NCBI GenBank assembly: GCA_964057225.1
Contig: OZ059899.1
Coordinates: 5,580,001 to 5,644,000 of the forward strand
DNA: 64,000 nucleotides
Direction: 5' to 3'
From: Auanema rhodensis
Lineage: Eukaryota > Animalia > Nematoda
Shown: piece by piece, positions 57,095-62,304 of the stretch
Position numbering within the stretch: the first letter of the stretch is position 1
How the letters are laid out: every line of letters starts with the position of its first letter
Position numbers and translations under genes: made by a program
Notes under the pieces: generated by a model
The model's database searches: none
Told to the model about the DNA's origin: nothing
Seen by the model: the letters and a program-made list of their open reading frames with translations, nothing else

Positions 57095-60000
57095 ATGACG
57101 GGGACTATTGATACTAAAGGTCGTTCACAGAAAGAACTAATGGCTCTTTGTGTGAATGAGATTGTTGCTCTCTTAATAGATGCTCAAAGAAATCAAAAAG
57201 ATGTAAACTTAAATCGACTAAAATGTGTGGTATGGTATAATTACTAATTATTGTTTTAATGATTAGTGCTAGGTTGCTCAAAAATATGGTTTGAGTTCTC
57301 AACCCAAGCTAGTAGATATCATTGCTGGAGTTCCCCTGGAGTACAAAGATGCTTTACTTCCAAAATTGAAAGCTAAACCTGTAAGAACTGCTTCTGGAAT
57401 TGCTGTCGTTGCTGTAATGAGTAAACCACATCGCTGTCCTCATATAAACTTTACGGGAAATATTTGTGTTTATTGCCCAGGTAATTCCTTTCCTTTGAAC
57501 ACTCGTCAAAAGTTTTTTTCTAGGTGGACCAGATTCCGATTTTGAATATTCCACTCAAAGTTATACTGGCTATGAGCCTACTAGTATGAGGGCAATTCGA
57601 GCCAGGTAATAGAATTTGATTCAAAATTGTTTGGAGATCACATTCAAATTTCTTGATATTACTTTTGATGGATTTTTACTATTTTTATGATTGAATGTTA
57701 ATAGTTCATCTAAAAAGTAAGCACTTTCCGCTTTTTGGAATACTCTAGAAATTCAGAAGTAAGAAAAATAATTTATTATTCAAATTCTATAAATATATCT
57801 TTAATATTTAAACTTTTATGTCATAGGTATTGAAAATATAAATACATTTCAGGTATAATCCTTATTTACAAACGCGAGGAAGAATTAACCAATTAGCTCA
57901 ACTTGGGCATTCTATTGATAAGGTTGAAATTTGTTTTGATTACGAGTTTAACCAAACTGATACAGGTTGAGTTCATCGTAATGGGTGGCACATTTATGTC
58001 CTTGGGTAAAGAGTACAGGGATTATTTCATTAGAAATTTACATGACGCTTTGAGTGGACACACTTCCGCCGATGTGCAAGAGGTTTGGCATAAACAAGAC
58101 GGAAATATTATAGAATTTCTAGGCTGTGGCATTCTCAGAAAGAAGTAAAATGAAATGCATTGGAATTACTATCGAAACTAGACCAGATTATTGCCTTCCA
58201 AGACATTTAGATGATATGCTTATGTATGGATGCACTCGTCTTGAAATTGGTGTTCAATCAACATATGAAGATGTAGCAAGAGATACTAATCGAGGTCATA
58301 CGGTATTAACTTATACATTACACTTTCTCCTTAATTGTTCTTATTATTAAGGTTAAAAGTGTTTGTGAAACATTCCATATGTCAAAGGACACAGGGTATA
58401 AAGTTGTCATTCATATGATGCCAGATTTACCTAATGTTGGACTTGAAAGAGATATTGAACAATTCCTGGAACTTTTCCATGTTTGATTTAATAGCTAATT
58501 GGTTATGCTAATTTTTTTGTTTCAGAATCCAGATTTTCGTCCTGATGGTTTAAAGCTCTACCCAACTCTTGTTATTCGTGGAACTGGATTATACGAGCTG
58601 TGGAAGAGTGGTAGATACAAGGTATTCAGAAGAAAACGAAAATATTTGATATTCATATTTTTAAGAGTTACCAGCCATCTGTCCTTGTCGATTTAGTTGC
58701 TCGCGTTTTGGCTTTGGTGCCACCATGGACTCGCGTTTACAGAGTTCAAAGAGATATTCCTATGCCATTGGTAATTTGAATTTCTAACTTTAACAAAACC
58801 TTTTTACAATAGGTTTCATCTGGTGTAGAGCACGGAAATCTTCGTGAACACGCTCTTGCTAGAATGAAGCAGTTAGGATTGTTGTGTAGAGATGTAAGAA
58901 CAAGAGAAGTTGGAATACAGGTAGAGTAAAATAAAATGTTCTTTTTGATGAATACTCTTAGGAAATTCATAACAAGATTCGCCCATATAGAGTTGAACTG
59001 ATAAGAAGAGATTATGTCGCGAATGGTGGTTGGGAAACCTTCTTGGCTTATGAAGATCCTGACCAAGTAAGTGTTTTCTGTTTACGTTGCAATCAAGTTC
59101 TATTTTAAGGACATTCTCGTAGGATTGCTACGTTTGCGAAAAATTTCGGATAAATCCCACAGACCAGAACTACAGGTGCGAAAGTTTTTTTGTATTTTTC
59201 CGATCTCAAATTTCAATATTTTCTCACATAGTAAAATTATATATTTTTTTGCAGGGTGATGTCTCAATAGTACGAGAATTGCATGTTTATGGATCTGTTG
59301 TTTCCGTATCGAATAGAGATCCTGGCAAATTCCAGCATCAGGTAGCATATACATTCCAGATAATACTACAAGTTTTGTTATTAAAGGGTTTTGGACAACT
59401 TTTAATGGAGGAAGCTGCTCGAATTGCTTACGAAGAACATGGATCCACAAAGATTGCTGTAATTTCAGGAGTTGGAACTCGTGATTATTACAGGTATGTT
59501 CAACAGTTTTTTCATTATTTCCTTTTATATCTTACTCAGTCCTCTCTTTTTTTCACAATTAAAAATTTTGAACACGACATTTTCTTATAGTTCTAATTTT
59601 GTCTTTGTTTTCTATAGAAAAAAAACGGCTGAAAACAATGTTCAGAAAATAATGTCTAAGCTCAGAATTTGTCGGAGTATTTTTTCTAGATCTCAGCTGG
59701 TGGCTTTTTTTACTTTTTTTCATAAAGATTAACTAAAATTACTTCCATTCGAAAAAATAGTCTGATGCTTACTTCCATAATAGTCATTACCATCGACTCG
59801 AGTAATCTAGTTGAATTCACTTAATTATCGTTTGTTGCTCGAACGCATTGACTACTGATTACCTATTCTTGATTTTTTCACATTTCAGTCTTATATAGTA
59901 AAACTTCTGAATTTACTCTTAATTAGTCATATATCGGACTTCATTAGGGTGCCTTATTCCTTTTTCTTTTTGCTTCTCGTTTTTCAAGTATTTGTCACAT

Positions 60001-62304
60001 TCTCTTCAAGGATGTAGTTTGATCTTCTAGCATTTCAATATTCTCCTTCAAACTTGCTGCATGCGAGTATATATTCTTTTCAATTTGAAGAATGGTAATT
60101 CTGCATGATTCACAAGTACGGAATCTGCTCATGCTTTCTGAAACATTCAAAAAAGAGGCGATTGTCACTTGACGGAATTCATATTCATATTGAAACAAAT
60201 GGTTCCTAGGCAGCAGAAGTTTCTTTATTCTTGAACATGACTCTGAATTATGGCAATTTTTGAAATTTTCTCCTTCCCAATATCGTTTTTTCTCTTTTTA
60301 CCTTGACTTGTTGTTGAGATGTGTGATGTTCAACACATTCCGATTGAACTTTCTGTTCTCTGTTTCGCCGTTCCCTAACTGCAACTGCTCCTCCTCTTCT
60401 TCTACTTCTATCCTGCTACATTTGTATGTTCAGGCTATTCTTCATCTATTTCCTATGTTTTCCTTCCGAACTATATTCATTGCATAACCGAGAATATCAC
60501 GTATCTTTAAACATTATAAGTTTATTCTTTTCACAATTCCGTGTCTATAACGTTTGTTACATTAAACAGGGAAAAGTTTTATGTTCTAAAGTGACAAAAT
60601 TTAAAAAAATGTTATTTTAAGAAAACTGATGCTTTTTCTTTTTCTTTTTTATAGTCTACTTTTGTTGCAAATAAGTTTGTTACTTACGGTGCACTTACTA
60701 CTCAAATTTCTTTTATCTATACATACAAAAACTTTTTTTCTTAGTATTATATAAGTTCAAAGTAAAGTCTACGTAGGTTTTAAAACTTTTAGAACAACAC
60801 TTTGAATTTCTTTACAAGATTCTATATTTAGAAGGATTTTAAGCTTTTTTTTTATTTTCGTGTTTATTTTTGATAATATTTATAAGACTACTTGTTATTT
60901 TTTCTCATTTCCTCTTGGTTACCCCAGAAGAAAGAATTTAAAAATATCTATGCTTCCAAAGATTTATTCATAAAACAACAGGTTTTCGTCTCTATTTTAT
61001 TTTTTTTCTTCTTCAATTTTTCTTTAATTAGATTGATGAGGACCAGCATTGATAAATAGCAATCCGAAGATCAAAATGATTATTTACTAATGCACTTATT
61101 ATCCATGTCATCTTTCGTTTGACTAAACTTTCTATTTTGCGCAAATCTTAATGAATTACAGTACAAGATTTGATAAATCTGTAGCTTTCATTTCCATTTT
61201 CTCATTTTAAAAGTAAATAATTTTATTTTTCTCTTGTATATTACGATGTTTCCTCTTTTTTTCATAAATATTAAGCTGCCTTCCAATACTTAATATAGCA
61301 TGAAGATTAGCATTCCTGAATATAGCTGACAGATGTTTTCTCTAAGCATCTAAAAAGATGCTTTATGTTGACATGAATCTTACCAAATTTTCCTGAAATC
61401 GGCAAAATGCTGAAAATATGAACGTTAGAAGTGTTTTTACAAGCATAATCTGATTGCATTCTCAAGTCGTTCCAACAATTCCTTATGCTCCTCCTCCACT
61501 TCTTCTCGCTGCTTTTTCAGTAGCCGTCTCTGGATATATTAAATTATCCGTTTATTTTTCTGTTCTTCCTTAAAATACTTATGATATTCATTAATTTTTA
61601 TTGATCTTTTTTTTCTTTTTTTTTGTCCGAAAATTCATTCTTCTCCAATTCTTTTTATTTTTCTCGTATTTTTCGTAATGAAAAATAAAAAAAAACTGTT
61701 CTGATATTTGGAATTACCATGATTGAGCATGATTATAGAAGCATAGGTTATTATAAATGATTTTAATTAATTTCTTTTAATTATATATTCTTTTGATAAT
61801 TCATCTTACTATTTAACTGTATATGTATTCCTTCGACTTTTCTTTCCGAATATGACCAGATTTCAGTTCACTTCTTCTCATATTGCTTTTTCTGGCTATC
61901 TATATCGAAGCGTGAGAAATCTCTATCTAAGTCAATGGAAACTGTGTTATTCATTGTCATTTCTCGCATATCCACATGTATTATCCTTCAACTCTTAATA
62001 TAATTAGCTAAACTACATTTTTTTGAAAAAAAAAATTTCTTGTTTTGAATTTTTTTATATTCATAATTATATTTTATAACAGCCTCATATTTGCTAATCG
62101 ATGGTTGAAAAGTTCGAACAGGATAAACGTCCCTAGGGGGCGGTCGCTTCATTTGCTTTTACCTCTACCCTCTTCTCTCTTCTCGTTCTACTCATACCAC
62201 TTGCCTGCGGAAACTCCAAACGCTATCGCATGCTAATCTCTTGTGTTTTCAGGAAACTCGGATATGAGTTGGATGGTCCATACATGAGCAAGACCCTGGG
62301 CTGA
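57095..62304 (+). CDS. elpc-3: Elongator catalytic subunit ELP3 (radical SAM + KAT)
   Basis: [24 protein letters not shown]...[69 protein letters not shown] and [11 protein letters not shown]. The last exon, 62253-62304 ([17 protein letters not shown]), follows intron 59494-62252 in the correct phase. Confidence 0.96.

Follow-up and report, generated by a model that had tools for sequence, protein, structure and literature searches.

Overlapping ELP3 and npr-33-type receptor genes in Auanema rhodensis: a shared exon behind a long intron that is probably the receptor's control region

In the window analyzed here (64,000 nt of Auanema rhodensis contig OZ059899.1, positions 5,580,001 to 5,644,000, forward strand), the gene for the Elongator catalytic subunit ELP3 and that for a putative npr-33-type receptor (GPCR) lie in tandem and overlap by a single base. 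Judged by sequence comparison, the arrangement is conserved from Pristionchus to Auanema and, since other nematodes have a matching layout, the long last intron of ELP3 is probably the receptor's control region, its upstream regulatory territory. The explanation favored here, tentatively and at a little less than an even chance, is one of overlapping tandem genes in which the long intron is GPCR regulatory DNA, with GPCR RNA starting inside it and receiving a spliced leader (SL) at an AG shared with ELP3.

The exon model of ELP3 has 15 exons encoding 548 aa, with no internal stops. Coding exons 1-14 occupy 57095-59493 (+ strand), and the introns measure, in order, 43, 43, 247, 43, 40, 49, 45, 44, 42, 41, 43, 79, 45, and 2759 nt. 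This bears out the sizes given in a first-pass annotation of the window: the thirteen upstream introns are of 40-79 nt, apart from one of 247 nt, and the last (59494-62252, + strand, GT..AG) is of 2,759 nt. Assignment to ELP3, as an elpc-3 orthologue, is based on Pfam matches to ELP3_N and Radical_SAM on single exons, on 84-89% identity of the full-length protein to nematode ELP3 proteins (over 537-547 aa), and on the conserved C-terminal KLGY.L.GPYM. RNA contigs, from four runs of one study, cover every ELP3 junction from 58082|58123 on. The junction 59493|62253, which skips the 2759 nt, is present in all four runs at contig depths of 34-52; it joins GATTATTACAG on its upstream side to the exon sequence directly 3′ of the acceptor at 62252 (written GAAACTCGGATATG, GAAACTCGG, and GAAACTCGGATATGAG). 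Cis use of this acceptor by ELP3, first proposed from the letters alone, is thus seen in spliced RNA.

The segment downstream of the junction (62253-62304, +) holds the last 17 codons of ELP3 and its stop, and by the exon model and frame analysis it is also an obligatory 5′ leader of the GPCR: a TGA at 62265-62267 blocks the receptor's reading frame, which leaves the ATG at 62304 as the receptor's start and makes its 5′ UTR overlap the last coding exon of ELP3. The ELP3 TGA (62302-62304) and the GPCR ATG (62304-62306) have one base in common, in a TGATG (62302-62306, +). A leader beginning at 62253 contains three upstream ATGs (uATGs), the last of which opens a short frame, MSKTLG*, that terminates on the GPCR ATG. 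Three uATGs would be unusual for a trans-spliced nematode mRNA, a point against the favored explanation.

Termination-reinitiation at UGAUG or AUGA is known in viral and some eukaryotic bicistronic mRNAs. The likeness here is an overlap between the stop that ends one ORF and the AUG that opens the next; the adjacency typical of such bicistrons is found in the window and also in two relatives (loci L001, with a TGA, and L003, with a TAG), although these differ in having stop and ATG 2 nt apart. Were translation coupled, the coupling would more plausibly be to the uORF of 6 codons in the leader of an SL-spliced GPCR mRNA than to full-length ELP3.

The receptor is, from its sequence, assigned as an npr-33 orthologue, in a group of class A (rhodopsin-type) neuropeptide GPCRs: pieces of the 7tm_1 profile match in exon order, and the orthologue set includes the P. 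pacificus protein named ‘npr-33’. All its exons are on the + strand. Exon 1 (62304-62775; from the ORF and orthologue matches) encodes a hydrophobic start that looks by eye like a signal peptide, a Ser/Thr-rich N-terminus, TM1, and the start of TM2. It is followed by intron 1 (62776-62899, 124 nt, mostly retained in abundant RNA) and exon 2 (62900-63030, TM2-TM3), which has a weak 7tm_1 match (profile positions 35-75) and is identical to P0039, a public protein from Auanema sp. JU1783; identity to P0039 overall is 145/145. Exon 3 (63460-63534, with an ERF motif and the end of TM3) matches profile positions 78-100, and exon 4 (63657-63790) carries TM4 and ECL2. The gene continues past the window: a loose contig end beyond 63790 reads RVLFKWAEFIV, the next residues of P0039. 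The public Auanema receptor model begins inside TM1 and is without the first 125 residues. An exact-protein lookup for RNA contigs or loci gave no record for the 199-aa intron-retaining ORF, the Nippostrongylus receptor, or P0039 itself.

In the RNA contigs the GPCR is ~10-fold rarer than ELP3. Its exons 3 and 4 are joined (63534|63657) in contigs of low depth (3-4.5), and the 62775|62900 junction is spliced in run X1 only, at a depth of ~10; the contigs of X2-X4 are unspliced there. ELP3 contigs continue unspliced to 63093 (X2), 63159 (X4), and 63188 (X3), with a single contig joining spliced ELP3 exons to 62250 onward. The ELP3 3′ UTR as seen in these contigs (62305-63188, +) therefore takes in GPCR exons 1 and 2, the retained intron 1 between them, and a portion of intron 2. 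An AATACA is present at 63196. An AATAAA at 62495 was considered as the main ELP3 poly(A) signal and rejected: in run X1 an unspliced contig covering 62751-62927 has a depth of 31.7, against 33.7 for the ELP3 body, so that most ELP3 RNA must pass it.

This extent alters one earlier proposal. The first-pass annotation had held that a cis versus trans choice would make intact ELP3 and GPCR mRNAs mutually exclusive; the choice is not so clean, as ELP3 mRNA goes 800-900 nt further, over GPCR exons 1-2 and the retained intron 1, and ELP3 3′-end formation therefore also competes with GPCR splicing. Nor is the arrangement that of a canonical SL2-type operon, in which the upstream 3′ end lies before the trans-splice site at a spacing of ~100-400 nt: here stop and start overlap by 1 nt, and ELP3 RNA passes the GPCR ATG to reach 63093-63188. 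Another comparison is with the SL1-type operons of C. elegans, reportedly described by Williams, Xu and Blumenthal in 1999. Like these, the pair consists of tandem genes with practically no intercistronic DNA, in which a single precursor can yield one mRNA or the other but not both. In SL1-type operons, however, the upstream poly(A) site abuts the trans-splice site, while here the sole candidate trans-splice site (62252) precedes the ELP3 stop by 52 nt, and the 3′ end of ELP3 is >800 nt downstream (at least 800 nt past the GPCR ATG).

The same contigs raise the possibility that the GPCR has no separate promoter, its mRNA arising by read-through from the ELP3 promoter past the ELP3 3′-end site, with splicing of GPCR introns 1 and 2 and either reinitiation at UGAUG on a bicistronic ELP3-GPCR mRNA or occasional SL addition at 62253, where the ELP3 donor would compete. 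ELP3 contigs do pass directly into GPCR exons, and about a quarter of X1 RNA is spliced at 62775|62900, a greater depth than that on the downstream GPCR exons; three lineages keep stop and start at a spacing of -1 to +2 nt, and the ~290 nt spacing in Pristionchus is operon-like. Read-through nevertheless seems an unlikely source of the receptor: reinitiation is as a rule highly inefficient once an ORF of 548 codons has been translated, a housekeeping promoter would mean a neuropeptide receptor expressed everywhere, and cis-splicing normally wins where an upstream donor is present. It would also leave unexplained an intron size of 1.9 to >9.4 kb in compact genomes.

Searches of the long intron found no Rfam family (E<=1) and no tRNA, and comparison within the 64-kb window detected no repeat family in it. 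RNA depth across the intron is 0, except for a 163-nt contig at 60338-60500 with a depth of 2.1 in run X2. A minus-strand ORF of 67 aa, with splice-like flanks, lies at 59995-60198. It has no Pfam match and no homologue, and an upstream ‘exon’ in its frame is without an ATG; a nested gene was rejected on these grounds. This ORF and the 163-nt contig could be taken to mean that the intron owes its size to something unrelated to the GPCR: neutral expansion, old mobile-element debris, or an unannotated gene or RNA inside. That seems very improbable, given the empty searches, the lack of any called gene in the equivalent introns of L003 and L007, and the persistence of a large intron in at least three lineages, exclusively those with an adjacent GPCR.

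The 3′ end of the intron (62120-62252, +) is GC-richer, CT-rich, and AG-free, a composition that suggests it as a candidate GPCR core promoter or outron. Its GC content is 0.48, while the intron as a whole has 0.30 and the 120 nt just before it 0.21, and it holds 7 CpG; the final 130 nt rank in the top 1% of the intron's 130-nt windows, and no other AG occurs over the 114 nt that lead up to the acceptor AG. The motifs listed in the first-pass annotation are all present: CCCTAGGG at 62131; GGGGCGG (62137-62143, +), which is GC-box-like but suggestive only, and one of just 3 GGGCGG/CCGCCC sites in the 64-kb window; CTAAT at 62233; and the TTTTCAG 3′ splice site (62246-62252, +). The L003 intron has a sole CCGCCC, 211 nt upstream of the corresponding acceptor (again suggestive only). 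It also holds true, as first noticed, that no other TTTCAG-type acceptor precedes the GPCR ATG: the stretch from 62253 to 62304 contains no more than three AGs (atgAG|T, atgAG|C, and caAG|A), and the context of each is poor. The GC-rich patch was considered as a structured RNA and rejected, with nothing stable predicted on either strand (fold z = 0.69 and 0.03).

An outron suffices for SL1 trans-splicing (PMC5737717); from this rule, and from the lack of another acceptor, we infer that TTTTCAG at 62246-62252 is also the SL trans-splice site of the GPCR. No SL-bearing or intron-initiated RNA was seen and no loose end is reported at 62253, in assembled contigs, which lose rare variants and do not reveal 5′ ends. 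As no contig lies over the 3′ part of the intron (depth 0 over 62030-62228 in all four runs), SL addition at 62253 and initiation within the intron are both inferred.

A sizeable minority of nematode genes are expressed without trans-splicing, and the GPCR might likewise have a promoter of its own, at the intron's 3′ end, and no SL, its RNA starting within 62253-62303 or a few bases upstream and bearing a short capped leader. The GC-rich patch and GC box are just 115 nt upstream of the exon, the assembled contigs hold no evidence for an SL, and a start near the ATG would sidestep some or all of the three uATGs. One argument that makes this doubtful is that RNA starting upstream of 62252 would carry a consensus TTTTCAG acceptor but lack a donor, and such RNA is by default a substrate for SL addition (PMC5737717); another is that a start beyond the acceptor would have only 51 nt to fall in.

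Comparison with other nematodes bears mainly on the intron. At L001, where a TGA is followed by 2 nt and the ATG, the last ELP3 intron is >278 nt; at L003, L004, and L005 (TAG, 2 nt, ATG) it is 1,880 nt, with the remaining ELP3 introns summing to ~430 nt. In Pristionchus fissidentatus (L007), the last ELP3 exon is >9.4 kb from the other ELP3 exons, and the GPCR ATG follows ~290 nt later, a spacing at which the two genes need not share an acceptor. (A possible acceptor immediately ahead of the receptor's ATG in Pristionchus was dropped, its bases coding for DEYS in P. pacificus npr-33.) A Heterorhabditis gene model, P0050, is an ELP3-GPCR fusion and points to an equal layout. Mesorhabditis and C. 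briggsae, by contrast, have the GPCR elsewhere. At the YYR|K position Mesorhabditis has an intron of 39 nt and C. briggsae has none, and in these species the receptor is preceded by a gene-free stretch measuring from 5.5 kb to at least 10 kb. The first-pass suggestion that the intron is a promoter region for the GPCR gains partial support from this: across species, a large last intron accompanies a GPCR next door, as expected for upstream regulatory DNA. The species sharing the layout may stem from a single ancestral event, leaving the link between intron size and adjacency without independent cases.

The introns of L001 and L003 have one 41-nt block in common, 93% identical and 60-100 nt upstream of the acceptor, and are otherwise unalignable. 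Together with the GC-rich patch, the GC box, and the conserved intron size, this block speaks indirectly for transcription starting inside the intron. The window's intron gave nothing above chance against those of L001, L003, and L007, and is therefore without a phylogenetic footprint; its GC-rich patch is not conserved in relatives as a compositional feature. Both the missing alignable block and the unconserved composition count against the favored explanation.

Under that explanation, of a GPCR promoter inside the intron with SL addition at the shared AG, the essential last 17 codons of ELP3 are a mini-exon continuous with the start of exon 1 of the npr-33-type GPCR, and the long intron before it would be GPCR upstream regulatory territory. 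Transcripts from the ELP3 promoter carry the donor at 59493, cis-splice to 62253, and terminate within GPCR intron 2, with GPCR exons 1-2 acting as 3′ UTR. GPCR transcripts would most likely initiate within the intron, a plausible place being its GC-rich final 130 nt or their vicinity; because these would have the acceptor and no upstream donor, their 5′ part would behave as an outron, with the spliced leader added at AG 62251-62252. They would then splice GPCR introns 1 and 2, bypassing the ELP3 3′-end site. A more ambitious reading, to which we give little credence, makes this a Rhabditina-wide shared-exon unit in which one 3′ splice site chooses ELP3 (in cis) or npr-33 (by SL trans-splicing). 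The last six codons of ELP3 would then serve as a uORF ending on the receptor AUG and handing ribosomes to the receptor, and ELP3 3′-end formation in receptor intron 2 would be a second switch, between splicing and polyadenylation.

Several known systems have features in common with the locus. Choi and Newman, in 2006, are said to have described a ‘two-promoter system’, with a large intron containing a second promoter. In C. elegans sma-9, a cis/trans choice at one acceptor, that of exon 11, is documented within a single gene (PMC2904332). The resemblance lies in one 3′ splice site taking either an upstream exon or a spliced leader (trans use here being proposed), and in a large intron with a second promoter. 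The products there, however, are isoforms of one protein, while here they are two unrelated proteins whose ORFs overlap by one base; also unlike those systems, the 3′ UTR of the upstream gene, ELP3, is here made up of coding exons of the downstream GPCR. The cholinergic locus unc-17/cha-1 has a common 5′ exon and a single promoter for two functionally linked genes. There too, one locus yields two proteins by alternative splicing and an exon, non-coding or in part coding, that both share, but the shared piece here is the last coding exon of ELP3 and the leader of the GPCR. We know of no functional link between ELP3 and the GPCR.

If trans-splicing does occur as proposed, the choice of cis or trans at one acceptor would select between two genes rather than isoforms of one, with a choice between splicing and polyadenylation layered over it, and the locus would be a tractable one for asking how the nematode spliceosome weighs a distant donor against the SL snRNP. 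The overlap of ELP3 and the GPCR already misleads public annotation: for these species, catalogues of neuropeptide receptors inherit a truncated model from Auanema and a chimeric ELP3-receptor model from Heterorhabditis.

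The ELP3 gene (the elpc-3 orthologue) is complete in the window on the + strand, from an ATG at 57095 to a stop at 62302-62304. A hand-built model of 15 exons translates without stops into 548 aa; in a domain search, single exons give ELP3_N and Radical_SAM matches, and nematode ELP3 proteins are 84-89% identical across its full length. The introns are, in order, 43, 43, 247, 43, 40, 49, 45, 44, 42, 41, 43, 79, 45, and 2,759 nt, exactly the pattern of small introns and one outsized last intron claimed in the first-pass annotation. Only 52 nt of coding sequence, (R) plus 16 further residues, lie in the last exon (62253-62304).

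For 58000-63900, four public RNA runs from one study (X1-X4, available as assembled contigs with depth) contain about 30% of the words, as would be typical of exonic coverage, and their contigs include all ELP3 junctions from 58082|58123 on. The junction 59493|62253 (GT..AG, 2,759 nt skipped) occurs in all four, in the same contig as the others, at a depth of 34-52. The last intron and the proposed cis-splicing of the exon ending at 59493 to 62253 are therefore real: ELP3 needs its distant last exon, and splices to it in cis.

The gene downstream is a rhodopsin-type receptor (GPCR). Its reading frame from 62304 has a hydrophobic, signal-peptide-like start (judged by eye), a Ser/Thr-rich N-terminus, TM1, and the NLALAD motif of TM2, and exons 2-4 continue the receptor. 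From residue 126 on it is identical (145/145) to P0039, a public Auanema sp. JU1783 protein, and this match identifies the organism; the receptor's orthologue set takes in a P. pacificus protein named npr-33. The P0039 model begins at a TTG inside TM1 (MGNAFVV...), without the first 125 residues, and so misses the N-terminus and most of TM1 (window 62304-62680), probably as a result of the overlap between the true start and ELP3.

This overlap is a single base: the ELP3 stop shares 62304 with the GPCR ATG (TGATG). A TGA at 62265-62267, 12 nt into the ELP3 last exon, closes the GPCR frame, so the protein cannot be lengthened by any upstream exon and must begin at the ATG at 62304. The receptor's 5′ UTR must thus overlap ELP3 coding sequence, which places the GPCR leader in the shared exon. 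As the first-pass annotation had it, TTTTCAG (62246-62252) is the only acceptor-like site upstream of this ATG; the 51-nt leader holds three AGs, in poor contexts. A leader from 62253 has three upstream ATGs, the last of which opens MSKTLG*, the ELP3 tail, terminating on the GPCR AUG; in two related loci (L001 and L003) the equivalent upstream frame stops 2 nt before the AUG. One might speculate that this short frame couples translation to the receptor.

The 3′ end of the ELP3 RNA lies inside the GPCR gene. ELP3 contigs run on unspliced from 62250 to 63093 (X2), 63159 (X4), or 63188 (X3), across the ELP3 stop, the GPCR ATG, exon 1, a retained intron 1, and exon 2, into GPCR intron 2, although one contig spanning two genes is no proof of a single molecule. 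In X1 the assembly breaks at the intron 1 donor, making local depth readable there: unspliced RNA over 62751-62927 has a depth of 31.7 and the ELP3 contig one of 33.7, while the spliced junction 62775|62900 has about 10. Further downstream, the joined GPCR exons 63460-63534 and 63657-63790 reach only 3-4.5. Since RNA at ELP3 level, with intron 1 retained, covers GPCR exons 1 and 2, this region is ELP3 3′ UTR. An AATAAA at 62495-62500, in GPCR coding exon 1, was considered as the main ELP3 3′ end and rejected, as most ELP3-level RNA passes it.

Some details of the receptor contigs may be recorded here. A low-depth X1 contig retains 97 nt of GPCR intron 2 before exon 3 (63362-63534), which itself starts with ATG; the equivalent X3 contig begins exactly at the AG common to the ends of intron 2 and exon 2, a point where an assembly would be expected to branch into spliced and unspliced forms. 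No contig with the exon 2|exon 3 junction was reported.

In C. elegans, a donor upstream of an acceptor leads to cis-splicing, while an acceptor that follows donor-less intron-like RNA (an outron) receives SL1. By this rule, the simplest route to a GPCR mRNA would be transcription starting inside the last ELP3 intron, followed by trans-splicing at 62253; transcripts from the ELP3 promoter would always contain the donor. A synthetic outron is sufficient for SL1 trans-splicing (PMC5737717), and within a single gene, sma-9, one acceptor is known to be used either in cis or in trans (PMC2904332), with a two-promoter system cited there following the same logic. Dual-use acceptors with intronic second promoters are the closest likeness, but here the acceptor would serve two unrelated genes whose reading frames overlap by one base. 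Neither a canonical nor an SL1-type operon fits, because the ELP3 3′ end lies downstream of the GPCR start.

The first-pass annotation saw in this acceptor an exclusive choice between the two mRNAs. The cis half of that model holds; it omitted the ELP3 3′ end inside the receptor gene and the three upstream ATGs. GPCR maturation would also have to splice introns 1 and 2, skipping the ELP3 3′-end site, so that a choice between splicing and 3′-end formation would be layered on the choice at the acceptor. No loose end is reported at 62253, in contigs that drop rare forms and cannot show 5′ ends, and which are therefore uninformative on SL addition. A capped, non-trans-spliced GPCR start in the shared exon or immediately upstream of it seems rather unlikely. 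About as improbable is expression of the receptor from ELP3 read-through RNA, whether through reinitiation or through trans-splicing that competes with the donor; the depth at junction 62775|62900 exceeds that of the downstream GPCR exons, a hint that intron 1 is also spliced in some ELP3 RNAs.

The motifs listed in the first-pass annotation are all found where it placed them. The last 130 nt of the last ELP3 intron are its GC-richest stretch (0.48 vs. 0.30; top 1% of windows), with 7 CpGs and no AG for 114 nt. GC boxes occur at only three sites in the 64-kb window, and L003 has a single CCGCCC, 211 nt upstream of its acceptor; both are no more than suggestive. The GC-rich patch is not a compositional feature common to the relatives. 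The four runs yielded no contig from the 3′ half of the intron, and Rfam, tRNA, repeat-family, Pfam, homologue, and RNA-fold searches found no gene or RNA inside it. That the size of the intron is unrelated to the receptor is a quite improbable reading, weakened by these negative searches.

One candidate nested gene was rejected: a minus-strand frame of 67 aa (features at 59995-60198 and 60306-60420) has a TTTCAG-like acceptor before it and, further upstream, a donor-like GTAAAAAG, but no ATG-initiated upstream exon, Pfam match, or homologue. A 163-nt RNA contig (depth 2.1) lies nearby, at 60338-60500.

A search without profiles, with GPCR exon 1 as the query, and subsequent locus look-ups gave several related loci. 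In L001, a metagenome contig, 2 nt separate the TGA of the ELP3 last exon from the GPCR ATG, and the 283 nt upstream hold no ELP3 exon. In genomic contigs of one relative (L003/L004/L005), ELP3 exons at 3916-5929 have introns of only about 430 nt together, the last intron is 1,880 nt, and a mini-exon ends in TAG 2 nt before the GPCR ATG. L007 belongs to BTSY01, Pristionchus fissidentatus (PMC11544036); its ELP3 last exon (9434-9487) precedes the GPCR ATG by about 290 nt, and the 9.4 kb upstream hold no further ELP3 exon. A Heterorhabditis bacteriophora UniRef protein (P0050) is a chimera of ELP3 pieces, including the N-terminus, and the receptor from TM2 on, an annotation artefact that points to the same adjacency there.

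Receptor loci of Mesorhabditis spiculigera (L002), C. briggsae (L008), and Steinernema carpocapsae (L009) have no ELP3 exon upstream, where the gene-free DNA measures from 5.5 kb to at least 10 kb. In L008 and L002 no gene is called over at least 10 kb (1-10000 in each), a length unusual for genomes so compact and in keeping with an extensive regulatory region of the receptor. At YYR|K, the ELP3 intron measures 39 nt in Mesorhabditis (L011) and is absent in C. briggsae (L010; whole gene 1,781 nt). In every case examined, the outsized last ELP3 intron accompanies GPCR adjacency. It is kept from diplogastrids to Auanema, in genomes where the rest of the ELP3 introns measure about 45 nt, as expected if it holds functional DNA; the species sharing the layout are not phylogenetically independent, and may reflect one ancestral event. 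The proposal that the intron is receptor promoter territory with a dual-use acceptor is thus supported in part, the comparative data favoring regulatory territory.

L001 and L003 share a 41-nt non-coding block (93% identity, E = 3e-10; L001 167-206, L003 7710-7750) in an otherwise unalignable intron, 60-100 nt upstream of the shared acceptor. It contains a perfect palindrome, GTTGCGCAAC, resembling a C/EBP or bZIP site. The block is a mark of constraint at precisely the place where a receptor promoter would be expected. The window intron has no alignable counterpart; it has only a TTGCGCAA, 1,116 nt upstream of the acceptor.

At its other end, ELP3 may itself be the downstream gene of an operon. 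The preceding + strand gene ends only about 170 nt before the ELP3 ATG, with an AATAAA about 100 nt upstream and TAATTTCAG 8 nt upstream of the ATG (56930-57095); the same gene precedes ELP3 in L003.
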